Origin: Phallusia mammillata
Lineage: Eukaryota
Assembly (NCBI GenBank): GCA_965637545.1
Contig: OZ281494.1
Coordinates: forward strand, 12,896,001-12,960,000
DNA length: 64,000 nt
Direction: 5' to 3'
The position numbers and the translations under genes are program-made. Within the stretch, counting starts at the first letter, position 1, and each line of letters begins with the position of its first letter. Positions 5,301 through 23,325 of the stretch are shown in pieces. The notes below the pieces were generated by a model. That model saw only the letters and a list, made by a program, of their open reading frames with translations. It had not been told where the DNA came from and did no database searches.

Positions 5301-6235
5301 CACCACTTGCAGACTCTAAAATACATGCAAAGTGTTTACAATGAAATCAAGGAAAAACAAACATCAGAAGATATTTTTAACACCTGAAGATATAGGAAGG
5401 ATGCACTGATCATGTTTCCAGATTCAACTTGGGACCAAATTTTCTCAGGAAGTTCCATTAAAACTTTTGCCTCTGCTGAAATTTCCATGTACCTAATATT
5501 CCATAATATTTTTTTTCACTAATTCTATCTATTGTTTATTAGTTTTTAGTCCATTAGAATAGATAATGATAACAAACATTAAATCAACACTCAATGCTCA
5601 ACTGATGCAATAGTCATATCAATTTTACACATTTTTGCCAATTCTGGTATCATTGGTTAAGTTAAGCCACCAAGCCCACCATGTACAAAAACGATTGCAA
5701 ACATGCAGTATTAACCTTTTGTGGTCTTTTGCAGATTGCTTTTGTTTGGCACGGGATTCTCTTTTGGTTTTGACTGTTTTGGCAGAGCAAAAAAGCTTCA
5801 AGTCTTTAATCGAGTCTCCAACATTAGCAGAACACCGTTTCATCTCTGCAATCGTGTCAGCAGCTTCAATAAGATCTCGATATCTAAATACAATTTTAGG
5901 ATTAACATTTTTAATTTTTTAATTGATAAAAGCTACTCTGTTTTAACTGACAGCTTGCACTTTTTGGCTTGAAGTTAAAACCAAATTTCCAATAAATTGC
6001 AGTATTATTCACAGTTAAAATCTTTGGCAGATATGATACATGTATTAATTTATCATGTATACAATACAAACAGCAAAATTTACAAGCAACAACCAGCAAA
6101 CTATATGTGTTACCGTTCTCCAACCATTTGTCGCAATTCCTCCTTTTTTAACTCAATTTCACGTCGAGTTTTGCTTTCCAGTTCGTTCATTTCGTCCACA
6201 TTTTTATCGGTAAAAAGTTGAGTTACTGACTCCAT
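2387..6235 (-). CDS. COG1: Conserved oligomeric Golgi complex subunit 1; exons 6235-6114, 5883-5716, 5492-5384, 5315-2953, 2615-2387 (996 aa)
   Basis: Spliced N-terminus has the Vps51/COG1 signature KKEELRQMVGERYRDLIEAADTIAEM, then KVLMELPEKIW; C-terminal WLESYVDPFDLDVFSPHI...RFSYLP. All four introns are GT-AG and phases give one open frame of 2991 nt. Confidence 0.93.
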
Positions 6236-6923
6236 GATATGCTTCTGTACCACAATCGAAAGTCGCTACATTTACTGTAACTAACTCTAGAAAAAACGAT
6301 TCCGAAAGTAGTTCACACTTTACAATTTTTATGTTTGCGAAAAATGTGAAAAATTGCCGTGTCGCCGATTGTTGTTTGTGTAATAGACCGGAAAATTTTT
6401 TAGACATCGCACAATTTCATAGACAACCTAAATTAGTAAATATCCTCCAAAAAATGAAGCATGTTACTACAGTTATTTAGCACACATTGTTTTAGAAAAG
6501 AAAAATAATAGTTTTGGCTGATAAGATTTTTTGCATGATCTTGAAATATGGCGGTTCTCAGCAGTTATCTGCTGCAACACCGGTCTCTAGATTTCTGAAA
6601 CAGGAAAATGAAACAAACAAACCAACATATTCGTAAATGCATAACGAGAAAATTATTGGTTTTCAAATACTAATCGAGTAAACTATTAAGTTTATTATTT
6701 GCGTGTGTAGTTTTGTTTCTTTTGGTTCCTTTTTACCAAATTGATTTAAGGTCAAAGTTCGTGAAAGCAAACATGGAAAGCAGTCTTGCGTGGCTGCTCC
6801 TGGCTGCATTTTCTGAAGATAGTAATAAGGGGACCTGATTTTATGTGAATAAAATTGGGTTTTTCCCATGACCTATTAATGTAGATAATTGCAGTATATG
6901 TTTTAAAATATTTGTTAAGTAGA
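6236..6923. promoter_or_regulatory. Probable bidirectional promoter region between COG1 and the ZFR-like gene
   Basis: 688 bp between divergent start codons (6235 minus, 6924 plus). Positional inference only; no specific elements identified. Confidence 0.55.
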
Positions 6924-9900
6924 ATGGCGTACTACCCAGGACAATATGGGTAAGTTTTTAAACTAAAAACATTTCAAACAATTCAGAACAAAGTTTGTTA
7001 TTTTTCAGTTGTTTTATTGTCAAAATGGTCATGTGCAATAAATTTAACTTGTAAAATAGATTAAAATGAAAATATACAAAGCACATGTATTGAATTCATC
7101 TACTGCAATTTTTTACAATATGTATTTTTAAGTAATTAGTTTTAAACATTTTAGGCAGTACAGCCAACCAACAGCAGCACCAGCAGCATCAGGATATAAC
7201 AACCCTCAACAAGTAACTGCAAATTACACACAATATGGAAATTTTAATAGTTCTGCATCTGGAACAAGCACTTCATCAACCAACACATCAACTGTTGCAT
7301 CATCATTCGGGTAATTCAACAGCTGTTTTTCTGTAGAGATAAACTGATATGTTTTTTAAAGGCCGGGAACGATTATTAGTACATCAGTGGGCCGATAGAA
7401 AACCAATAATTTGTTTCCAGTTAAAGGCCTACATTTTTACCTTTTCAATGGCAAAACAATCTCCAAAGATGTTCAAAAAATACAAACGTTAGGTGATTTA
7501 ATGGTGGGGTAACAAAAATTGCAGTGCTAAGGTTTTGCTTTGCTTTATGTATGTAATAAATGTTAATAAACAAAAACTTGTAAAAATGAAACTTAAGAAT
7601 GCCATGACAGAGCATCAAAGTTTTTTAAGTTGCTTTGCCTTTATACCAATCATCGATGGCCAATGCATAAGGCAGAGACACAGTTGTGTCATGCAATAAT
7701 AATATAGTTACAAACAGTGTTTTTTTAAGGTTTTTTTTTTCTCCAGCGGTTTCCCAAAATTTGCCAGTAGCCTAATAAATAATTCGTTTAAAGCAAATAT
7801 GGCTATTTTTTGGTATTTAAATAAAACACTTGCGGTCTCTTAAAACTACTTAGCGGTCACCCAAACCAAACCTTAAAAAAAAACCTGGTTACAAACATCC
7901 CATTTATTGGCACTCGGATGACAAAAACAATACTGTTAATCTGTACAGTACCAAGTTAATTGCCTGACATTTATTTATTACATTGCTTTTAATGTGTATG
8001 TATGCTGCACTTCTTACCAAAAAGTTTTTATCTTGAAGTTTATTAGTTGTTGCTCAAATCTTTCTGTAGCAACATGTATTAAATCATGAATTTCTTTAGT
8101 TTCTTTTCACGCTTTGTTATTTTCTGTCTTTTTTGGTAGCTACCAACAAACTTCTGTGGCAAGCACAACGCCATCACAAACAACCGCACAAACTTTTCCA
8201 TCCCAGTCATACTATGGTTACACCAACGTTAGCAGTACTACAGTCAATCAACCAACATTTCACAACTTTGCTGTAAGTGCTTTCATTCAAATCTTTGTTT
8301 TATACATTTTGTCACTTTTTATCATGAGTTTAGTAATTTGAGTGACCTAAATGCACAATGTTATGGGTGGCCTTTTTGGTTTTCTAATTTTAATCAAAAT
8401 ATCCAGTTTTTAGAAGGTTTCCTGCATAATATTTTGCTTGGATATTAAACAAAAATGAGCAATTTTATTGTGAAAGGAAAGTTGTCCTAATAAAATACTT
8501 TTACACAAACATTTATTGCATTGAAATTTGATGCTATGTTGTTGAAATATATATATATGTTGATGCCAGCCACTCTTAAAAGCAAAATTATGATGTGTTG
8601 TGTAATGTTTTTTGAACAGGTTTCATGTACAGTAAAAACTGACAAAGCATTAAATGTATGTAACTTTGCAATTCTTGTTTCAGAATCTTTGGTACAGTCA
8701 GACAACAGCAAATAACGCTGCTGCTGCTGCTCAGACAACAGCGCAACAACAACAATCCACACAGACAAGACAAGCTCAAATGTCCGTTCAACAAGTTGCT
8801 TCTTTGCATGCTCAGGTATAAGGTTAAACTGAAACCAGTGTTTCTCTTTTTTAGCTTGTTTTATTCTGGAAAACAAAAACCACCCTGGCCACTGATTTGT
8901 TTGACCTTTTATCATGATAAATAAAAAGTTGCATAAATTGAATTTTCATGCTGATGTTTTTGTAATGTTGAATGATAGATTCTAACAAATATACACTCCA
9001 TAATGTGATGTAACGCTTAAGTATGGTCAAAGGTTACTTCATTTCCCTTTTTTGAGGTACAGTTATGCCAAATATACTGCATACCTATTTGGCTTGCTGA
9101 ATATTTAGTGCCTTCAAAATAGCCCCAAGGGAGATTACATAATGAAGCTCAGACATATGTTTGCAAGCTGTGAGACTTAAGTTTTTTTTTTTAGTCAGTA
9201 TTACAGTCAAGTGGGGTAAAAAAAAAACATTTTTTGAAAATTTTGTTACCATACTTTTGTATTGTTTTGGATAAAAAAATTTGCTTCAGATGTGAGGGCA
9301 TTTTTCTACCCCAACTTCGGTATAATTTTTTTACTGCATTTAACTATGTGCTGTTTTGTGCCTAGTTTACTTATAATATTTGTAGACCAACTTACATGTT
9401 TTCTCTAATAGCATTTTCCTAAATGTAAATGTTATAGCAGTTTTCATATTGTTGCAGTACATGGGATATCAGCAGGCATTTGTACAACAGCAGCAACAAC
9501 AATATCAACAACAGCAACAACAACTTGCAAACACAGGTAATAACTTAGAGGTAGAAGTTATTCATTCCTTATAACAACTGCTTTGTTTTATGTGTAAGCA
9601 ATTGTTGGGGTGTTTTTAACGGGAGGTATAGTGAACACAATGCATCAACAATTTGCAGTTACATCTGTATTTTAAACAACCTTAATTGTTGTGGTTTAAT
9701 ACTGAAATGTTGTATTCTACAGTTGCTACTACAGCTGCATCACAACAAGCTTATAAATCACCAATTGGGGCAAAATCAAGTCCCCAATCCAACATCGGCA
9801 TAAACCAAACCACAGTTGCTGGTAAATCAGTTGTTTTTTATTGTAATATACAAATAAATATGCTGAATGTGGGATTGGTGTTTATGGTGTTTAAAAGTTG

Positions 9901-12900
9901 GCGCTTGTTAACTGTTTGTACTTTTCTACTGCTGCTCTGCATTTACATAATGCAAGTGGTTTATGTTTGAACATGTCTGCCAACACTTGGCATTACTGCT
10001 TGGACTTTTATTCTGTTGCTTTGCATTTTTTATTCTTCACATAATGCTGGTGGTTTATGTTTGAACATGTCTGCCAACAGAGTTTGATATTTACACAAAC
10101 CTTGCTTACTTGTATCTTGCTGTCACAGCTTCTTGGGGTAATGCTGCCACCCCACGAACTCAGCATGAAAGTTTTCCAACTATTCCTCTACCAAACCAAC
10201 CACAGGTATTTTGAAAGTCTTGTTGTATTGTTCTTGTAAGAATGTGTGAGCTTTTATTATTTAGGGGTAGCATTTTTCAAATATAAATGTTTTTATTGAA
10301 TTTAATGTTGATTTTCTTTTAGACCGATCCTGTTAGTCGTACAACTGGTTGGGGGGCAACTTTTACCCCTCAACAGCACCCTCCTTCTCAACCCCCACAA
10401 CCCCAGGGTAAAGATTGGACCCATGTAACAACTGGATACCAACAGCAGGTATGAACCAGTATTATCTGATTTAAAAGAAATATTTTTTTAGAAATATAAA
10501 AAAAATTGATTTTTCTTTAGTACAGAGTTTTTGAACCTGTTTTTTCTTTTTAACTTTTTATAGATACAGAACTAAAAGTAGTGGATTAATCCTATAGAGA
10601 TTCTTATAGAGCCTTCTTCTTTATATTTGCCACCTAAGTGTGTACAATTTACTGCTTGGGGACAAATTTATCCTGGTTTAAGAACCACTGTTTTAGTTGG
10701 TGCTTTGCTATATGCATTGTCTGGTACTGTTCAAGTCTTGCATATTGAGTACATTCCAAATATGTGTTAATATTAACAAAAACAACCCAACTTTTTTGTC
10801 CTAGAATCTTTCAAGAGGTAATTACGGTGTATCTGGGGGTGACTTCAGTTGGTCACAGCAACAGGCACAGATGAACATGCAACGCCAAAACCAGGCATTT
10901 ACTCAGCAAGGAAAAACTCCAAGTTACCCCAACCAATCTCCACAGTATGGTGGTCAGCAGCAGCAAGGTAAATTCACTTGAAAACATTTTTTGTAAGAAA
11001 TCACAAGTCTGTAACAAAGTGCTTCCAATGACTATAATTCTGCTTTAAGTGACATGTGAATTAATTAAAGCCTCTTTTTTAACTAGGACCCAACCTTGAT
11101 ACTCGGGCATACAACAGTAGACCTCCGGATCCAGCAAATTTTCCTCCTGATGCCCGTGCTGCTTGGGGCCAGCATGCAAACAATTGGGGTGAAAACTGGA
11201 ACAAAGACCAAGGTTGGGGTGATTGGAATGGGGCCCAAAACCGACCCAGAGTAAATGAGGATGGACCCAACATACCCCCATTTCCTGAAGCATGGCAGAT
11301 GGGAAACCAACCCCCAGGGCAGAATGGGAATTGGGATGAGCGTAATCGAGCTAATTGGAACCAAGCCAACTGGCAGCAGGTTAGGAGATACATTTTATTT
11401 TTGGAAGGCAATCATTTGGATGCTAAATTGTAATGCAAGGTATGACTATCTCACTCACTATTTATAGTTTTGCATATCAAAACACTATTCATTGTTATGA
11501 CTTATGATATTTATGGGTCCCCTTCCCTGAAGGGGACACATATTGTTTTGTCTATATTTTTTTTTTCTTTCTAACACGGATTTGTTCCCACGTTTTGGTC
11601 AAGAAAGAATGGTTCAAACTTTTTCAAATTTACACACATTATAGATATTGGTCTAAAGATGGTCCATGTGAATTTTGACCCCGTTTGACCCCTCGGTTCA
11701 CCCACAGCCCCCCAAAACGTGAATTTTTTAACGCAGATTTGTTCCCACGTTTTGGTCAAGAAAGAATGGTTCAAACTTTCTCAAATTTACTCTTATTATA
11801 GATATTGGTCAAACGATGGTCCATGTGAATTTTGACCCCGTTTGACCCCTCGGTTCACCCACAGCCCCCCAAAACGTGAAATTTTTGAAACGGCTATACT
11901 TGCTAAAGCAGATGTTTCTGGAGTTTCATACTTTTTGATTGGTACATTGCAGCGTATTTTAAACTATTTTGAAACTTGAAGTTGTATATATCCATTTTCA
12001 CCCCTTTACCCCCAAATATTTGTTTGTTTGTTCACATGTTATTGAGGCCAGAAATACAAGACTTAACCTGCTGAAATTTTTAACAGCTGTGGATAGGGTG
12101 CTCCTTGTTGGCTGGTAAAAATTTCAGTGCAATCGGCTCAGTAATAGTAAAAATATGTTTTTACATGCTGTCTTCTGTCATATTTGTGCTCGCTCAGTGC
12201 ACAGCTGACGCAATGGGAATGATTGACGATAGTGGCACATGGAAAAATGCCTCTGCTTCACGCATGAACGCAGTCGTCACTTGACCATTTTCTCTCTGGT
12301 TGGAATTGAGATGATACGGTGTTAGTGATATTGCGCTGTAAACGTTAACGCTGCGGGGTCACGGCAGGGACAGGCGATGCGTATGACGTCATGACCGTAT
12401 TTGCCTGTCGCTCAGTGCACGGCTGACGCAATGGGAGTGATTGACCATAGTGGCGCATAGAAAAAAATGCCTCAGCTTCACGCATGAACGCAGTCGTTAC
12501 GTGACCATTTTCTCAGTCAGATAGAAGTATCAACTCTCAAGGGAGTAATTCACTTGTTTACGATTAAGGCGGGTGAATGCAGCGGGAGTGCTCAGCTTGA
12601 CGTCCGGACGGACGTTTTATGAGGCAGTCGTGTCGGTGATTAGAAATCAGCTGTTTTTGCGCAGCTATGCTATGTCGTTTTATTAAGTTATCAAGCACAT
12701 TTTAAGTTTTGGAAAATTGTGTTTAAAAACTGACCTTGAACGACAATATCAAGGTCAAAGCATGAGAATAAATTGAAAGTATTTCCTGTTATTTTTTCCT
12801 ATTTACTGTTTTTTTGTAATTATATGACAATAATGATGCAAAAACAATACGGACAAAACTTTTTGGGTTAAGGCTAAAGTTGGTTAAGCTTGTCCTTAAG

Positions 12901-15900
12901 AATCTAAAAATAACCAGGATGTTTGTTTACCATAAATCCGCACAAACGCGCATATGGGGACCCATTATATTATGCTTGCAGAAACAATTAGGTTATAAAG
13001 TGCCAGGAAAAAGATAGGGACCCAATGAAATGTAGGTGCCAAATATATATCCATTATAAATATAGTAAATGGAATATGTGATACATCATTAAATATGATG
13101 TAGTATATATAACCCAGCAATATATAGGAAAACCGCTATTCTAGTTTACAAACAAGTTTAGTTTCAATCTTCATAGAAAAAAAATTGTTCAGGTTGATTT
13201 AGAATTACAAACAAATCTGAACGAAGCACCTAAATTTATTGCCACAGATTAGCCTTAAAATATACCTTTAATGAACAAAGCATAAACAATTTGTTGTTGT
13301 TGTTGTTTTGTAGCAGACAGGCTTTGAACAAAATGGAGCGAGACAAAATCAAGGAAATCGGTAAAATTCATTCTGTTTTTGTTGACACTATGTTACTAGC
13401 TTTACACAATGACTTATATATCACAGGTTTGCAAGAGGTGATAACCAACAGCGGTTTCCTAATAATGGCAGATACAGTCCAAATTCCAGACAATCTAGAG
13501 GTAAGCTATTTGTGCCATTTTTTTTTGCTTTATGGTCTCTCAGTCTGTTTCATGTTTTTTAATACAAGGTGAAAAAACAGATCGTGAACTTTGGTCACCA
13601 GCTGACAATAAGAAAAAGTTTGGAAACAAAGTTATAAAGCCGCAGGATTCTCCAAAAGAAAATGTTTCTGATAAAATTGTAAGTTTAACATCGTAATAGG
13701 TGTGTGTTTAAAAATGTAATGAATACAGTCACTATTATTGCTTTAACAGTTATATCTTAGGCTACATTGTGTTATCATTTTTTCCATTTAAGGTCCAAGC
13801 CACGGAAATCAAGTCTTACTTGTATTCATGGTTAAGTATGCGACATATGCATCCTGTGTATGATTTGCACTCAACTGGAGAACGTCCTGATCAGACTTTC
13901 CGATGTGAGGTAAGAGAGCCTTATCTCAAGTGAAACCAGCTTGCAAACTGCTAGTTTAACACACAAAAGAGGAATGTTTTAAATCAAAACATATTTTTTA
14001 CGCTATATATATATATAAACATAAAATTTTGCAGATTTAAATTAGTGGAAAAACCATGTTATGTGAAATCAATAGGTCTGCTCTATAAAATATTACAAAG
14101 TCAAAAAAGTAAATTCAAAGGCAAGTTTGTTACTTTATGTATGGCTATTGTCTTCATTAAAACAGACCAACTACCAGAAATGCTGGATCAAAATTAATGA
14201 ATGAAATCTCTTATTGAAAATCCAATGTGAAAATTTCTAAACCTTCTAATATTTTCATCTTAACACAATATATTTGTTGAACACTACAGCTTCGAGTGCA
14301 AGGATATAAGTTTGTCGGAGTTGGTGAGTCTACAAACAAGAAGGAATCCCTGAATGACGCAGCATGGAGTTTTGCTGATTTCCTTGTAAAACAGGGGGAA
14401 CTAACACCCAGTGAATTGCCAGCCAAAACAGTAAGTCAAAGCCTTGTTTATAATTCAGATGAACTTCAACCAATTTACATAAATTCAAAACACAGCATGC
14501 AAAAAGATACTTAAAACCGGTGTTTCATTTCAGAACGGAACAAAACAAAATAATTCTGTGAAAATAATTTATTTCATTCCGTTTTTTTTTTCTGTCTTAT
14601 CAAAATAAATTTACAGTATTTTGGTTTTAACAAAAAGAACAATCCTTTGTTTAAAAAGAATAATCCTTTGTGTAAAAAGAACAGTCCTTTACAACAAAGA
14701 ATGAAAGTTATAACACACAAGAATTGTTGTTGGGTAGATAATACGTCACACAACATTTGTCAACTTAGGTCAAAAATATGGTGCATTGTTGGAGCCTAAA
14801 TTTTGTTATTATGTTGCACAGGCATGAAATTTTTTGCAACTTTCTCGTGTTAAACATTCAGAACGAAGTACATAATAAAAATCAGTGATATTTCATTTTT
14901 TTTCTGTGTTTAGTTTGCTTTTTATTTCTGTATTTTGTTCCTGTATTTGAACCAAAAATTAATTATTTCATTCCGGTATAATGTTCCATTCCGGTATGAA
15001 ACACTGTTCAAAACAACTTGCTATTCACACTGGAAAGTTACATATCTATTAGTCATTAGCTAAAATGACTCTAAGCATCATCGACTCATGTGTATGCTCA
15101 CATATTATCACATATAGATGAATCTAATTGAAAATAATTTAATCAACTAACTGATCATCTATCTAATTTTTATCATAGCAGATGGATGATGATATTTCTG
15201 ACAACTTCGGTGTAGTGAAAGATGATGAATCTGAGACAAGGGTTGAAATTCAACCTAAAAGAGGTGAGGGTAAGCAATAAATATCAAACAATAATAATAC
15301 ATTACATAAACTGTAACAAATGTAAATGCGGTTGCAAATCTTGATTGTCAGTGTATTAAGGTGTCTCCGAAATCATTGTTTTATGCCTGTATTATTGTGG
15401 GTAGTAGGGATGGACCAAAACTGCAAATATCATGTTTGGTCGAACCCCACGCATCTCACACTAATCCCCAGTGCTTGGCCGGCACACCCAGCGCCCAGGG
15501 CATTGTGATGTCGCAAACATTCCCGATTTTCCACTAGTTTTGTAGCATTTCAAGATCCCTGTAGTACATGCCCCAGAAATCCGTGTTTTGTCACTATATG
15601 CTTGGCTGATCACTGAGCATCAAAAACAGGTACCGAGTTCTCGGGTTCTGACTCGGCTCGGCCCATCCCTAGTGGGTAGCCTTTCCTGAAGGTAAAATAT
15701 GGTTTGCTTAAATCATTTGGTCAAGAAAGAGTGCTTTAAATCCTCCCATAGTTTGACCTCAGTTGATCACAAGTAATATTTTTAAAAATGGCTACACTTG
15801 CTAAAATAAATGACCCAGAAGTTCCATACACTGTTAGTTAGTATACTGCAAAGTGTGTGAAAGCATTTTGTAGATTTTAGTTGAAACCCCTAACATAAAA

Positions 15901-18900
15901 TCTTATACAGTTGAAGATATGGTAGTAATTGTTTGTTAGCTAAAATTTCAGCCTATTTGGCTCAGTGACAGGCCCAAAATAATGTCACATAAAGTTTTCA
16001 AATAAACTTAGGCCGGAAATGTACTTGTAGAAAGTGTTGCAAATGATGTACGTGTTCAACCATCAAACTTTTATTTTCTTAGTTGCCAGTGGTAACCAAT
16101 ATGTCCGTAAGAACCACAACCATAACCAGATGAACATGAAGGGACCCAAACAAAATATTCCCCCATTGATGAGCCTGGTCACAGCCCCACCAGTAAGTTG
16201 CATTTAAAACGTTTTATGAAATTTTCCGAGAGTCATAATTGTAAAGAACATAAAGTTTATTTAAGGTTTGCATGTGATTTTGTGTTGAAAAATTAATGAT
16301 CACACTCGGCTGCTGCTTTTAGAATCCCTTAACATTCAAGAACATAGCCCGAGCTAAATGTTGATCAAAATTCGACCCCCTTGTACCTTTTTAACACATG
16401 ACCTTTTATCGCCGTTATCTACACGTTTTTACCTGCCAATTGCACTTGTTTCTCACCTTTTTTGCTGCTTTTACTGGTTTTGCGCCCTGCTTGGTTTTAC
16501 ATTCATTCATTTGAGAATGACACAAGTTGCTGTTGAAACGTCATGTTTTATACAAAAAAAAATGGCTTGTTTGTTTCTTGTTAGAATTTAAAAAAAAACC
16601 GTTAATTGTGTACCTAATGATTTATGTTTTTTACAAAAGCTGTTTTTGTACACAGCTCGATATTTGCTAACCCAATTTTTATTTTAGGGACATCCCCATA
16701 TGCCCCCTTTTATGGATCGTGGTTGTGCCCCCCATGAAATGTGGGGAATGCCCCTTCATCCCCCACCTCACCCACCTCCGTGGATGATGGGACCCCCTCC
16801 GCCGATGCCAGGACCATGGAGGGGTATGATGGGAGGACCAAGACATGGTTGGCATCCAAAGAATGATTACTGGAGGTTGGAAGAGCAATGGATGGAGGAG
16901 ATTCATCATAGCCAAGAGTAGTAAGTCACTTTTGTAAAATAAAACTAAAAAAAAAAAAATTTAATCAAGGTCATAACTGCCAGGGTACTTGTGTATAAAG
17001 AATACAGAATGCAGATGTTTTAACAATCATTGTTGTCATCATCAGTGCAGGATTGTTCTCTGGCAGTTGTATTTTTGATTAAATTGCTCTTCAAGTTCTT
17101 ATATGTTAAGTATACCTAACTAACTTGGTAACTTTTGCACATGTATAAACCTGGTAATAAAGTTACTTGGATAAATATATGTAAAAGTGGAAAATGAACA
17201 CTATTGTTAATGTTTGTATAAACTAAATTTTCTCACTGTAAGCATTCTGATTTATGGAACCTGTGCGCAAATAAATTTTTAAACATTTCTTTGTAACTTT
17301 CCTACACCATATATGGTCAAAAATTGGGAAATGTGACTGGTTAAAACATTTGTTTTTGGATGTGAAATATAATATTTAATATTATAGTCAAAACCCAGAA
17401 GACATATTTATCAATCAAATGATAATGAGGCATAAAGAAGCAACTATGGGTGTTGGGGGTGGAATGAGACCACGCCCTAATCTCGCTATGCCGATGGATG
17501 GTCGTGGCGGTGGAGAATGGCAACCACAATATGTAAGTTACAGAAAATATAATTTTTGAAAAACTCTACACTGATTGTATCCAGTGAATTTTGTCTATTG
17601 TTTATAGTGGTCAATTTTTATTCGCAAAAGATCCAACTTAGCGAAGAACCAATTTGATTTTTCAATGCTTGTATAAATCACACAAAACCAATACTGTTTA
17701 ACCCTTTAACTGCGGCGGGCGCATAAATGCGCCCCGACACATGCCTCGTTGTAAACAGCGATACAAATCATATTAGTGCGGATATTTTTTACAACTGGGG
17801 TGCGTTTGAAAGCTTAGGCATATTAGCTTCAATTTATTCGAAAAAAATGATATGTTAGTATTTGAAAAAAATTAATTACACCAAGGAGAAAGTCAAAATT
17901 CAGAAAAAACGTGTTTTTTTCTAATTTATGTTTTGCAGCCATTTTTTTTTATTTTACGCTTGGTTGATTAACAGACAGCTGTTTGGAGTTTGTTTCAGGG
18001 CTCTGTAAGGGCGTTGTGGCGATCTTTGTTTACAATTTGATGTGTGTTCAGCTGAATTGGGCTTGAAAGTGGGTAGTTTTGGGCAGTAAATTTGCCTTGG
18101 TTTGCTTGAATATACTGCTGTATCAGTCAGTTTAGCTTTACTATTCGTGGTGACAGCAGTTATTTATCAAGAAAACAACTGTTGTAGAAGCATTTTGACT
18201 TTGGAAGTGTGTGGTTGCTGGCCAATATTTTGATTATATCTGGCCCTCAACTGCATTTACATTGTCAAATGGTAAGAGGATTTGACCTCATGAATGAACA
18301 ACAAATACAGAAGAATCAGTGCAAAGTACCTTGGGAATGCTTGGAATTGTGTTTTTTCTGTGAACTGTGTTTCAAACTTGCACATGCTGTGGTGTAATGA
18401 TACATAATAAACATCCCATGTACAAACACTTGTAAATGAATTATGTGTGTACAGGTATTCAGTAAACGTTTGAATAAGTCCGTAAATTGTCAAGTTTGCC
18501 AAAAATTATTATTGAAAACACGTTTCCTACGCTCAAAAACATTAAATTTATCCTTTACTACAGAAAAATAAGAAACTAAAATTGATCATTATGACGTCAT
18601 GAGCTAATTAATGACGTCATCGAAAAAACACACATCAAGTTTTGTAAGGAATTGTTTGTAAAACAACTTGGAAATAATAATTGTAACGAAAAACATCCAT
18701 AAACTGCAATTTTATGGAAAAATAGAATTGAAATGATGTCATTTCGTAAGTGATGACGTCATCGAATTTTTTTTTATCTCTAAATGGTAGAAAATTTTAT
18801 ACCCAACAACTTTCCCAGAGAAAGTTTTTGCCTATCTTCTATCGATTTTGCATAAAACCCTAAAGAGCAAGAGCATGTCTAAACATTAATTTTTGTCAAA

Positions 18901-21900
18901 AAGAATTCAGCAGTTAAAGGGTTAACTGTTTCATTCAGAAAAATCGTAACCAACTAACCATGGACGACCGTCACATAATGGCGAAACATGCTGCTATTTA
19001 CCCACATGAAGAGGAATTGAAGTCAGTTCACGAACTGGTGACGATTGCTGAACAAGCTCTTAAAGCTCTGTCTGACCAGTTTGTTGATGAAGATCACCCT
19101 CTGCCAAAATCAGGTGAGGCAAAAATCTTTACAAGTACAATATGGAATGTGTTATGTTTTGCACTGAAATAAAATATGTAATAGCAATCATAAATAGATT
19201 GTAATTTATAAAAGACACTAATACAGTAATAGCTTACAAAGGGCATTGGCACTCTATGTTTTTTTCCATGCAACTGAATCAATCAATTTGAAGTTGGTTA
19301 TTTATGTGTCTGTTAAAGCTTTGTTTAAATTTTATATACTAAAGAAATAAAATAGTTTGCAGTGCACATTATCAACTGTAAAAACAATTAAAATACACAT
19401 AAAATGATCAATATTAACTATGCATATTTGGTAATAACCCATGAGATTGTGATAAAAAGTGTTTATTTTTATGCTCAAATATATTTTGTATTAAATGTAT
19501 AAAAAAGTGTGATGATTCAGTGTGCTATGATTAATACTTGGTGAAACATAACAATTTCACTTTATGCTTGAATTATTTAAACAGAAGAAGAAATTGAAGA
19601 GGAGAACTTGGATAAAGAGGATTCTACAGAAAAAACAGAAGATGGAAATGAAGAGAAATCTACATCTGGGGATGAAGATAAACAAGAAAAGAAAGCAAAA
19701 ATACAAATGTATGAAATCAAATATTTATTTTTGAAGCAGTTTACCAAATTGACCATTCAATGTAAAAGCATAGAGCCAATAAATGATAAGCTGCAGACTT
19801 ATCATTTATTGGCTCTATGCTTTTACATTGATACTGTGACACTGAGCCGACTGTGGTTCCCAAGCAGTTGCTTGGCCATTGTGAGCCAGTTTTATGTGTG
19901 CTGTATGCCCAGCTGTGGCATTGCACAGACTAGGTGATGCATGGGGTTGTACCCTGTTGCTCCTAACAAACTGGAGTGCCGTTGGATGGCTACACTAGCC
20001 AATGCGGCCGATCTTTCGTCACCAGCTGCACTGATGAGACCTTATAGGTCGAAACAGTGTGCACTGTCTGCAGCTGACCATTCAATGGTGTTGAGACTTT
20101 CTAATTATAATAGGTTATCTAACATAAATGATAGAGCCATTTTTGTTAAATTTTGCAGTCTTTGATTATTGAGGTAGAGCTACTAGCACCATAACTCATG
20201 TCAGTTACATTTAGCTAATTTTCAATAGGTGGCACAGGAACTGAATTATTTATTTAGCGGCTAACTAGGGTTACGGTTGGCAAGTAAGGTTTTGAAAATT
20301 ATACATTGGGAACTAAATTTTAGTTTCATTAAATGTGCGAGTTAGTTTCATTAAATGTGCGACTGATGTGAGTTATGGTGTTGGTAGATTTTCCAATCAT
20401 TGAACTAATAAAGATGCACTGCGTCTTATCATTGGTGTTTAGTAATTTTGAGTGTTATTATGTTAGAGCTTTTGTTTTTTAAATATGATTTAGGCATGAT
20501 TACATTTGTCTGTACAAACCAAAAGTTATTGGTTATCAGCATTCCGACATAGGATACACATTATTTTTTTTGTTGCAGTTTGAAAAGGCCCAAGAAGCAA
20601 CCCAAAAAGCTAATTGACACTCGCCCTCGCATCCTGTGTGCAGTCAATAGAGTTGGTACTTTAGCTAAAGGACTTCTCATTCACAACGATCCCAATGTCA
20701 GTCTTGTATTACTTTGCGGAAACGTCCCCACCCAGAAACTGCTACAGAGGGTTTTAAAGCATTTACCAGGTAAGAATGTTTGATTATGCCATATAAAATC
20801 TGCTACCAAAAACAGAATTTGTAATACACAATGAAATGTTATTCCCATGTGACAGAAAACACCTATATGAGATGCTGGCTATGTTATTTATTTCTCCAAA
20901 CAATATCACAGTGCTAAGCATATCTTTTTGTTCAGAAAAAATGAAGGAAGTTAACAAGACACTGGAGTTTGAACTTGAAGAAAATGAGGCTGGCTTCACA
21001 ATTTTTGCAAAGTTGGCTGTTAAAGTTAAGGTAAGAACTTACATTCTCAAAAGGTTTTCCGAGTTCGTGCACTTTGCAACACCACAGTTCAATACAACTT
21101 TACTCAACTTTGGGTGCTTGTAGAGGCTGTTCTAACTTCTGACAGAAACAAAACAAGAATTCACCTAGTAAAACATGCAGCTTATCATTAAAGTGAGACC
21201 TCACAAAATCAAATACTTGTGCACCTGTGTAGAAGTTGCATAACATATGATAAAGGTTGCATGTTTAAAACCCAATACATGCTACCATTTACTTACCTTG
21301 CTTTGCTGCTATGGTTAGTTGAACTTAAAATATATCACTTGCGGAAGACATTCTTAAAAGCATTTCAAAGCAACACACCATTTGCTAATGAAACCAAACT
21401 TTTGTGTTCTAAATTGCATGCTTTTTCATAGGTTTTAGTTACACTCACATCCACCTCCTTAAACAAACCAAAACCCAAAGTACAAGAAGAGAAAGAAGCT
21501 GAAGAGGAAAAGGTAACAGGGCCTGAAGGAGTGGGTGAAGATGAAGGACACAAAGAAGATGCAGAGAAGGAGGAAGAAAAGCAAGAAGGAGATCAGAGTG
21601 AAGAGGAGAAGAAAGAAGAGACAGAAGATGCAGAAAACAACCCAACAGAACAAAAGGAAGAAACTCCACCAAAAGAGCAAGAGGAATCTAATGAGCAAAA
21701 ATACACATGTGTCGATTCGGAAACAAAGATAGATGAAATAGGTTTGATTTAATCCTTGCTTTAAAATCCTAATCTATTTCAGAGAAACAACCTAATGCTT
21801 TATTAACATCCTTTCGGGCATAAATAGTTTCAATCTGGGAACCTTACATACACTTTTGTTTACGTGTTAATTTGCAATGTTTAGAAGTGGAATCAAACAA

Positions 21901-23325
21901 TGAAGAAATTGAAGGAATGCTTCCGAAACATTTGCTGCTTGATGCGCTGGCACAACTGCGACATGCTAAATGGTTTCAGGTAATGGATATGCCAAGTATT
22001 TTTGGTACATTTTGCCTTCAAATACTAAAGAAAAGTGCTTGTTTAAAACTATCATATTTTTGTTGCAGGCACGAGCTAGTCAGTTGGATTGTTGTGTTGT
22101 CATGATTCGCATACTAAGGGATTTAAAACTGAGAGAAAAAGTTTGGAATCCACTATCCAATTGGGTACAGATCACTTTAGCATTATATAACATAATGTTA
22201 TGTAGTTTCAAACCTTTGTTTACTTTCCAGGCAATTGAAAACCTGGTATACATTTCATTGTCAAGTTCAAATGAACAAATGGGACATGGTGATGCATTCC
22301 GACGTGTGTTTGAAGTCCTAGCTGGTGGGGTTTTGCTACCAGGTAACATTGAAATAAATGGCCTCGAGCAATATGCAGCAAGTGCCACTTTCGTGCTTTG
22401 CCAAGATTTAGTTTTTACTGAACAGTTTTGTCATTTAGATCGACCTGGTGTTCAAGACCCATGTGAGAAAGACAAGGTTGATGTGTTGGATTGCTGTTCA
22501 GATCAGGAGTTGGAAGAGATGACTCGATATGCTCAGTATGTTCTCCTGAAAATTGCTTTTAGACAAATACACCAGGTTCGTTGCCTGAATTTACAGGTGC
22601 CATGGTAATGTGTGTACAAGACATTGATTGCCAACTGATCATGTTTATTTTTAGGTACTTGGTATGGAAAGGTTATCCCTGAATGCTCCTCGGCCTAACA
22701 ACCATTACCCTACATCTCATAATGTCAATAGCATACAGAGCAAAGATGAGAATGGTAGTGACCTACCAAACAAACAGCACTCAGAAAGTGATAAAATCAC
22801 AACAGAAAATGTAACAGAAACCTCTCCTGTAAAAGAAGGTAAGAATGAACTAAGAAACGTTTTCGGACATAAACAGGAATATACATGATGTTACCCTAAA
22901 TAATTTATTAATAGTTAGTTTATACATATTTACACTCTCAGAATCTACATTTTTCAAAGTTTGATTTCAGCATTGTGCAGTTACATTAATATTTCTTCTG
23001 TGTAACGTGGTGCAAAAGTAACCTGTTTCTCTGTCTAGCAGATAATGAAAATGAGCAAAAACTTGCTGACCTTTCAATTACCGATCCTGAAAACAAACAC
23101 ACTGAGGTTGTAGATCTACAAGAAAATGACAGAGTCACTGAACAAATCACAGATTGTCCTGAGGAAACAGATAAAAATTCCGACACGGATACCACAGACA
23201 AAAGTCAGAATCTTGACCAGTCCAGTTGTATGGAAAAGAATTCTGAGTTAAAAGAAGCACCTTCGGAGCCGGAGCCAAATCCAGATCAGATTCAACAGCA
23301 AACATCAAACACAGAAGACAATTAG
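6924..23325 (+). CDS. ZFR: ZFR-like DZF-domain RNA-binding protein, multi-exon: Q/S/T/Y-rich N-terminus, Trp-rich exon, DHX9-type dsRBD, Pro-rich region, DZF domain, acidic tail
   Basis: DZF motifs DDRHIMAKHAAIYPHEEEL (18960), RVGTLAKGLL (about 20650), LDALAQLRHAKWFQ|ARA (about 21935-22075), GDAFRRVFE, DPCEKD, KIAFRQIHQ|VLGM. Phase-consistent GT-AG exon chain traced from 11087 through 18939 into the DZF; long N-terminus with C-terminal DZF matches ZFR rather than ILF3. Stop TAG at 23323-23325. Orthology is uncertain because no zinc fingers were found. Confidence 0.8.
7715..7887. mobile_element. hAT-type MITE in ZFR intron
   Basis: Imperfect TIRs CAGTGTTTTTTTAAGGTTT / AAACCTTAAAAAAAAACCTG; perfect 8-bp TSD GTTACAAA at 7707-7714 and 7888-7895. 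Confidence 0.85.
9944..10079 (+). repeat. Local direct duplication (about 40 bp, ACATAATGC..GTGGTTTATGTTTGAACATGTCTGCCAACA) in ZFR intron
   Basis: Two near-identical copies starting at about 9944 and about 10039. Confidence 0.8.
10523..10690. mobile_element. Degenerate hAT-like MITE
   Basis: Decayed TIRs CAGAGTTTTTGAACC / GGTTTAAGAACCACTG; flanks CTTTAGTA and TTTTAGTT match at 6 of 8 positions. Confidence 0.4.
11511..12980. mobile_element. Helentron/DINE-like non-autonomous element with internal tandem repeats
   Basis: 10-bp subterminal inverted repeat ATGGGTCCCC (11513) / GGGGACCCAT (12956-12965); 5' hairpin CCCCTTC-CCT-GAAGGGG; internal 157-bp tandem (11581, 11738) and a direct repeat of about 104 bp (about 12190, 12410). 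Superfamily is inferred from architecture and the ends are approximate. Confidence 0.55.
14518..15006. mobile_element. Older hAT-like MITE containing a 21-bp minisatellite
   Basis: Termini CGGTGTTTCAT...GAACGGAAC / GTTCCATTC...ATGAAACACTG; flanks CTTAAAAC and TTCAAAAC (6/8); AAAAAGAACAATCCTTTGTTT-type units at about 14632-14698. Confidence 0.6.
15405..15671. mobile_element. hAT MITE with TAGGG termini
   Basis: TIRs TAGGGATGGACC / GGCCCATCCCTA (11 of 12 match); perfect 8-bp TSD GTGGGTAG at 15397-15404 and 15672-15679. Confidence 0.9.
15715..15970 (+). mobile_element. Decayed relic related to the 11.5-13.0 kb element
   Basis: Shares collinear words TTTGGTCAAGAAAGA, TTTGACC, GGCTA(C/T)ACTTGCTAAA, AAAATTTCAG and GGCTCAGT with 11750-12145. 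Confidence 0.55.
17702..18921. mobile_element. Non-autonomous piggyBac transposon
   Basis: TTAA TSD at 17698-17701 and 18922-18925; perfect 12-bp TIRs CCCTTTAACTGC / GCAGTTAAAGGG; repeated TGACGTCA palindromes inside; no transposase ORF. Confidence 0.92.
19750..20087 (+). mobile_element. Retrozyme-like unit of 325 bp bounded by a 13-bp direct repeat
   Basis: TGACCATTCAATG at 19750-19762 and 20075-20087; the interval is GC-richer than its flanks and contains a 34-bp perfect hairpin, small hairpins (CCAAGC-AGTT-GCTTGG, GGCTA-CAC-TAGCC) and a hammerhead ribozyme. Element class is inferred. Confidence 0.6.
20023..20076 (+). ncRNA. Type I hammerhead ribozyme, sense strand of ZFR intron 19708-20578
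   Basis: Stem I CAGCUGCA (20023-30) / UGCAGCUG (20069-76), 8 bp perfect; CUGAUGA (20031-37); stem II GACCU-UAU-AGGUC; GAAA (20051-54); stem III ACAGU-GUGC-ACUGU; GUC triplet, predicted cleavage 3' of C20068. All core nucleotides present. Confidence 0.93.

Follow-up and report, generated by a model that had tools for sequence, protein, structure and literature searches.

A ZFR-like DZF protein of Phallusia mammillata with a DHX9-type double-stranded RNA-binding domain and no zinc finger found at its locus

Proteins of the ZFR/Zn72D type carry three C2H2 fingers (U1/zf-met type) N-terminal to their DZF domain. A gene of Phallusia mammillata raises the question whether a protein of this family can instead hold a double-stranded RNA-binding domain (dsRBD) of the DHX9 type in the place of these fingers. 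The gene lies on contig OZ281494.1 of assembly GCA_965637545.1, within positions 12,896,001-12,960,000 of the forward strand; this stretch of 64,000 nucleotides (nt), analysed as a whole, is the window to which all coordinates below refer. It is quite probably a single expressed gene on the + strand, extending from about 6.9 to 23.3 kb and coding for a ZFR-family DZF protein of approximately 1405 amino acid residues (aa). The most far-reaching interpretation, held tentatively and with a probability of roughly 45%, is that the only ZFR orthologue of tunicates lost all its fingers and uses a dsRBD captured from DHX9, a swap of modules within the ILF2 partnership and a union of domains parallel to that in ILF3.

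The dsRBD is encoded by two exons with AG/GT flanks, both of phase 0-0. The first (13793-13909) comprises 39 codons and ends with ...FRCE, the second (14290-14430) comprises 47 codons and starts with LRVQGYKF.... Compared singly with all PDB chains, exon 1 matched residues 6-41 of 1whq (E 5e-5; residues 3-37 of DHX9) and exon 2 matched residues 39-82 of 3vyy (E 1e-7; residues 38-82 of DHX9). Among the PDB structures both exons match only the dsRBD1 of DHX9 (RNA helicase A) or of its fly orthologue MLE; no other dsRBD type, including those of ILF3, matched either exon up to E=10. The two matches adjoin exactly at CE/V, and therefore the proposed splice restores one complete dsRBD1. Aligned with the N-terminal DHX9 fragment P0060, the spliced domain of 82 aa reached 72 bits in dsRBD1 (residues 3-82) but only 0.1 bit in dsRBD2. 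Submitted to Pfam separately and unspliced, neither half gave a match, and in the protein atlas exon 2 fell into generic dsrm clusters only, at 0.82, which is a lead rather than evidence. A metagenome contig from JGI encodes a protein fragment of 515 aa (P0037, source name 'dsRNA-specific ribonuclease') in which DHX9-type units similar to dsRBD1 and dsRBD2 recur and no helicase is seen within these 515 aa; outside helicases, dsRBDs of the DHX9 type have therefore been put to use at least once more.

The connection of the dsRBD to the DZF domain was followed in contigs from four runs of four independent studies, aligned to positions 13450-19300. One contig per run (4314, 4327, 2996 and 2101 nt) covers the region, and because all four give the same eight GT..AG joints they were taken as spliced RNA. 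The joined chain is 13500/13569-13678/13793-13909/14290-14430/15179-15263/16083-16192/16688-16920/17388-17532/18939-19113, and beyond 19113 the letters in the contigs of all four runs are those of the sequence at 19585. It forms a single open frame in which the dsRBD is followed by a linker, at first acidic and then rich in Pro/Met/Gly, and by the first DZF exon, leaving no room for a finger or helicase exon between dsRBD and DZF. The original prediction had stated that the two dsRBD exons splice in phase 0 into a domain of the DHX9 dsRBD1 type and that the exon chain continues in frame to the DZF domain, with neither zinc finger nor helicase exons. All of this held: the joint 13909/14290 is seen in the RNA contigs of the four studies, and both DZF_N and DZF_C follow downstream.

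The absence of fingers concerns the whole locus. In no + strand frame between 5500 and 24500 was the motif C-x2-C...H-x3-7-H/C found, and examination of every C-x2-C pair in 5500-19000 revealed no plausible finger interrupted by an intron. No helicase exon was present at the locus, and no dsRBD in the predicted tail 3' of the DZF domain. The protein is like ZFR in combining a DZF with a putative module for double-stranded RNA (dsRNA), yet it lacks the fingers by which ZFR is defined.

The DZF domain was recognized by Pfam in two parts. DZF_C, for which the cut-off is 24.3 bits, reached 56 bits, and DZF_N appeared as three pieces on separate exons with 14.6-24 bits each, which stay under the cut-off of 27.1 because introns split the domain. 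The PDB relatives are ILF3 DZF domains only (E 1e-15), and a word search with a stretch of DZF_C returned only two fragments. Residues of helix 9 in NF90 contact NF45 (Wolkowicz and Cook 2012, PMC3467086); in an alignment with ILF3, the equivalents of NF90 Q309, E312, Q319 and F327 are kept in Phallusia. Similar to ZFR and Zn72D, the protein combines a long low-complexity N-terminus, an RNA-binding module in its middle, a W/R/E-rich stretch ahead of the DZF and a C-terminal DZF (DZF_N and DZF_C), with ILF2 as the expected partner. It differs from them in having a single DHX9-type dsRBD where they have C2H2/zf-met fingers, and in large E/K-rich insertions within DZF_N. There are two such insertions, both strongly acidic and in frame (19585-19708, ~40 aa, and 21480-21741, ~85 aa); a similar acidic stretch occurs at the site of the first in one related locus (L007).

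The gene model was completed on both sides of the RNA-verified chain. For the N-terminal part, a first model obtained by depth-first search on splice scores alone favoured tiny exons and was dropped; the exons given here come from composition-aided dynamic programming on splice sites, start at 6924 and are a prediction only. The predicted coding sequence of 4218 nt, a 3' untranslated region of 33 nt and a 5' untranslated region of ~63-76 nt add up to the lengths of the two longest contigs (4314 and 4327 nt), and the exons modelled by hand 3' of 19113 total 1631 nt versus 1664 nt in the RNA contigs. The predicted protein opens with a low-complexity region of ~465 aa rich in Q/N/G/W, followed by the product of two small conserved exons, the dsRBD (~532-612), a linker of ~200 aa, the DZF domain (~813-1249) with its two E/K-rich insertions, and an acidic tail. 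Its N-terminus, M-A-Y-Y-P-G-Q-Y-G-Q-Y-S-Q-P..., is reminiscent of the start region of human ZFR (Q-Y-S-Q-Q-P). The features of the gene are as follows.

6924..13360, + strand: N-terminal low-complexity region, Q/N/G/S/T/W-rich, ~465 aa; predicted by our own splice and composition dynamic programming.
6924-6949 (with ATG), 7155-7310, 7427-7492 (doubtful), 8140-8272, 8684-8815 and 9458-9536, + strand: first half of its predicted exons; dynamic programming.
9723-9821, 10129-10205, 10323-10448, 10805-10967, 11087-11379 and 13314-13360, + strand: second half of its predicted exons; dynamic programming.
13427..13500, + strand: small conserved exon with the motif RYSPNSRQSRG; start predicted, 3' end fixed by the RNA joint 13498>13567, cut +2.
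13569..13678, + strand: exon with the RELWSPA motif and a phase 0 end; four runs support the RNA joints at either end, conserved in other loci.
13793..13909, + strand: dsRBD exon 1, 39 codons, phase 0-0, approximately DHX9 dsRBD1 residues 3-37; RNA joints and PDB matches.
14290..14430, + strand: dsRBD exon 2, 47 codons, phase 0-0, DHX9 dsRBD1 residues 38-84, with the N-K-K motif of dsRNA contacts; RNA joints and PDB matches.
15179..15263, + strand: acidic linker exon; RNA joints.
16083..16192, + strand: linker exon; RNA joints.
16688..16920, + strand: linker exon, Pro/Met/Gly-rich, motif DYWRLEEQW at its end; RNA joints, no Pfam family.
17388..17532, + strand: linker exon; RNA joints, no Pfam family.
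18939..19113, + strand: first DZF exon, motif DDRHIMAKH; RNA joint 17532>18939 in four runs, DZF_N match.
19585..19708, + strand: acidic insert exon within DZF_N; contig ends past 19113 match 19585, donor chosen by hand.
20579..20769, + strand: DZF_N exon; DZF_N match, hand model, conserved in other loci.
20936..21030, + strand: DZF_N exon; hand model, consistent in frame.
21432..21741, + strand: DZF_N exon with the E/K-rich insertion of ~85 aa; hand model, no other donor leads in frame to the following exon.
21885..21979, + strand: DZF_N exon, motif LRHAKWFQ; DZF_N match, hand model.
22069..22164, + strand: DZF_C exon; DZF_C 56 bits (cut-off 24.3), ILF3 alignment.
22231..22342, + strand: DZF_C exon; Pfam DZF_C and ILF3 alignment.
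22439..22575, + strand: DZF_C exon with the helix-9 dimer interface; ILF3 alignment, mapped on the residues in PMC3467086.
22655..22838, + strand: C-terminal tail exon; hand model.
23039..23325, + strand: last coding exon, stop TAG 23323-23325; hand model.

The neighbouring gene upstream lies on the opposite strand, and downstream follows an array of BTB-ZF genes; an exact database look-up with one BTB-ZF product gave no record. Between RNA contigs and assembly a few letters differ. G15261A, in the linker, changes R to K in three of the four RNA runs, and the other three (16801 G>A, 18983 G>A, 19031 C>T) are synonymous changes; all four differences are most simply alleles. Within intron 17533-18938, short contigs of low depth and rich in mismatches lie at 17698-18149 and 18365-18925, and are probably transcribed repeat copies from other loci.

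The arrangement is shared by other genomes. A profile-free search with dsRBD exon 2 against 1.84 billion representatives gave 79 hits, nearly all of them open reading frame fragments of unannotated contigs; one long hit (P0019) was spurious. The best four (P0001-P0004) are 53-66% identical to exon 2 and carry a signature unlike that of DHX9, VGVGE, and AAW-x-FA instead of NAA-x-DF. Their contigs (L001-L003, L004, L005/L006 and L007, with L011-L015 added for the species of L001) stem from metagenome or Logan assemblies and probably come from tunicates. In L001/L011, L004, L005/L006 and L007 the RELWSPA exon, both dsRBD exons, the linker and the DZF exons are collinear on one strand with 75-89% identity, and the N-terminal low-complexity exons are likewise collinear; conservation extends to predicted exon 11087-11379 in L001, L004, L006 and L007, and to exon 13427-13500 in L001 and L004-L006. 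In L011 one contig of 44 kb contains the complete part from dsRBD exon 2 to the DZF end, and L007 represents a compact genome with introns of ~60 nt. None of these loci contains a zinc-finger motif. An assembly chimera was rejected, as the same arrangement occurs in four genomes other than that of Phallusia. In L004 an open reading frame with RVT_1 and Exo_endo_phos_2 (763-2565) lies upstream of the dsRBD exons, a retrotransposon insertion in or beside the gene. A scan of JGI metagenomes with an alignment of exon 2 returned only the contig already known, and a synteny test with the neighbouring genes of the window gave no hits. An upstream extension in the species of L001 led back to the contig already known.

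Across the five dsRBDs compared, pN ranges between 0.10 and 0.31 and pS between 0.66 and 0.97, i.e. synonymous sites are saturated; therefore the fusion is old and the dsRBD is under purifying selection. Among the 79 representative hits there was no complete database protein bearing a dsRBD of the ZFR-like kind, a weak negative which suggests that the architecture is not widely annotated. In the searchable papers only finger-DZF, DZF-dsRBD-dsRBD and DZF-only proteins are described, and no paper on the present architecture was found.

The source of the dsRBD was sought in its exon boundaries. The best hit of the DHX9 type (P0005) lies on L009, the sole DHX9 locus examined, where the first coding exon M-A-EIKSFLYAWLG...KCE is followed by GTAAGT and the next exon, 5.5 kb on, reads VRVDG...ELPMKA and is again followed by GTAAGT. 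The intron after CE that the original prediction had proposed to look for in DHX9 is present there: its position is common to this gene (KCE/) and the ZFR-like genes (FRCE/LRV). The end of the second exon, which has 47 codons in both, is common as well (ELPMKA/ in DHX9, ELPAK-T/S/ in the ZFR-like genes). In Phallusia the two exons form a cassette of phase 0-0 between phase-0 boundaries, which together with the shared boundaries is what exon shuffling into a phase-0 intron is expected to look like. Exon 1 starts about four codons upstream of the match to DHX9 residue 3 (13793-13804 versus L009 3700-3730). The position of the DHX9 start codon and a few bases of its 5' untranslated region seem to have turned coding (Q-A-N/S/T), for which the nucleotide alignment is suggestive only.

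A maximum likelihood tree of the full dsRBD1 sequences united the five ZFR-like domains in one clade (100/100) with a long stem. The DHX9 of L009 was its nearest relative, with 45-52% identity versus 38-46% for other DHX9s, and it shares with the ZFR-like dsRBDs the residues WLG, which are WCG in vertebrates. The donor lineage is only a lead, because the tree comprises 88 columns and is thinly sampled. L009 and L003 derive from the same JGI sample, but their G+C contents are 38% and 46%, respectively, so that they may not belong to the same organism. Compared with the dsRBD1 of DHX9, RNA helicase A or MLE, the ZFR-like domain is alike from end to end (43-52% identity), in the intron after CE and in the second exon of 47 codons. 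The protein differs in lacking dsRBD2, the DExH helicase core and HA2/OB/RGG, and its domain differs in having S for N6 and P for N30, in a long stem branch with fast early divergence and in the exon-internal position of the DHX9 start codon. The recurrence in four other genomes agrees with the predicted distinct architecture, and the boundaries held in common with the DHX9 of L009 and the phase 0-0 cassette point to exon shuffling, with the transfer presumably directed from DHX9 and the donor boundaries preserved.

For the function, the RNA contacts of DHX9 dsRBD1 are informative. These are K5, N6, Y9, N30, N53, K54 and K55; binding is abolished by Y9A and by joint mutation of N53, K54 and K55, and N30A is neutral (Fu and Yuan 2013, PMC3597700). 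K5, Y9, K54 and K55 are invariant across the five ZFR-like dsRBDs, so that dsRNA binding is likely retained; N30 is replaced by P. ZFR binds dsRNA by its zinc fingers, and ILF3 binds this ligand by dsRBDs (Haque et al., 10.1101/2022.06.15.495552); a dsRBD in exchange for fingers would therefore be a swap between functionally equivalent modules. We propose that a two-exon cassette of phase 0-0, derived from coding exons 1 and 2 of DHX9, was probably inserted by exon shuffling and then kept by purifying selection in deeply diverged genomes, probably those of tunicates. The C-terminal DZF would pair with ILF2/NF45 as those of ZFR and ILF3 do, the dsRBD would supply the dsRNA binding that zinc fingers supply in other animals, and the protein might act as a dsRNA-binding ILF2 partner in nuclear RNA processing.

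Several observations weigh against this proposal. The label of the runs as RNA is a guess; the eight common splice joints, for their part, are explicable only by spliced RNA. Minor isoforms that skip the dsRBD may exist and would be compatible with the contig data, and the N-terminal 1.4 kb of the coding sequence is a prediction. Among the RNA contacts, N6 is S in all five ZFR-like dsRBDs, and N53, kept in Phallusia, is S in four of the five. At the ILF2 interface of NF90, R308 is replaced by D and R323 by L, with K at the next position, so that pairing with ILF2 is plausible from the aligned residues and not assured. The orthology with ZFR rather than ILF3/STRBP is argued from the domain order and the low-complexity N-terminus. 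Lastly, a Zfr-like protein of Ciona has just a single zinc finger annotated (Wolkowicz and Cook 2012, PMC3467086); it may be an orthologue with an unnoticed dsRBD, or a second gene, and a finger-bearing paralogue may exist elsewhere in the Phallusia genome.

The last of these points leads to the alternative that survives best, i.e. addition rather than replacement: a ZFR with three fingers would have been kept elsewhere, and the present gene would be a paralogue confined to this lineage, in which the fingers were lost and a dsRBD was acquired. The Ciona protein with its single finger would fit such a history, and the search of the Phallusia genome covered this window. Nonetheless, five genomes share the low-complexity N-terminus, the linker and the DZF in collinear and conserved form, which is what the main orthologue would be expected to show, and we infer replacement, regarding addition as unlikely though well worth keeping in mind.

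It is less probable still that the gene is no ZFR orthologue at all and descends from the ILF3/STRBP lineage or from a common ancestor of ZFR and ILF3, which would make the pairing of DZF and dsRBD older than the split of tunicates and vertebrates. That only ILF3 domains were found as solved relatives of the DZF would agree with this descent, as would the position of tunicates as sister group of the vertebrates, where ILF3 first appears (PMC3467086). ILF3/NF90 and STRBP/SPNR do unite a DZF and dsRBDs in a single chain; similarity over the DZF_C amounts to ~45%, and E312, Q319 and F327 of helix 9 are retained. Whereas in those proteins the DZF is N-terminal and two dsRBDs of another subtype come after it, the Phallusia protein has one dsRBD of the dsRBD1 type before a DZF that is C-terminal as in ZFR; this dsRBD matched no ILF3 dsRBD, and the long low-complexity N-terminus is ZFR-like. 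Both ILF3 and STRBP have been reported from vertebrates only (PMC3467086), and the union of DZF and dsRBD seen here looks independent of theirs and parallel to it. Finally, two separate genes (e.g. with an operon partner upstream), which contigs could in principle bridge if adjacent, or a decaying DHX9 fragment carried along, are very improbable, as GT..AG splices connect all exons in one frame in four studies and the arrangement is identical in four other genomes, and the decaying relic was rejected for the strong purifying selection on a dsRBD that keeps its contact residues despite saturated synonymous divergence.

The DZF proteins ZFR, ILF3 and ILF2 are, along with DHX9, central to the handling of dsRNA, be it in splicing, in A-to-I editing, in the formation of circular RNA or in innate immunity. 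It is an open question why the two ILF2 partners recognize dsRNA by unrelated modules (10.1101/2022.06.15.495552), on which a lineage with a dsRBD-bearing partner of the ZFR type would be a natural experiment. For annotation, names and models based on zinc fingers will mislabel this gene. For the evolution of the family, it would provide a clean and datable case of exon shuffling in which the boundaries of the donor exons are kept. If the replacement of fingers by a DHX9-derived dsRBD is true, the fingers of ZFR and a dsRBD can functionally stand in for one another in the partnership with ILF2, and the RNA targets of ascidian ZFR would be predicted to be directly comparable with binding of the ILF3 and DHX9 types.

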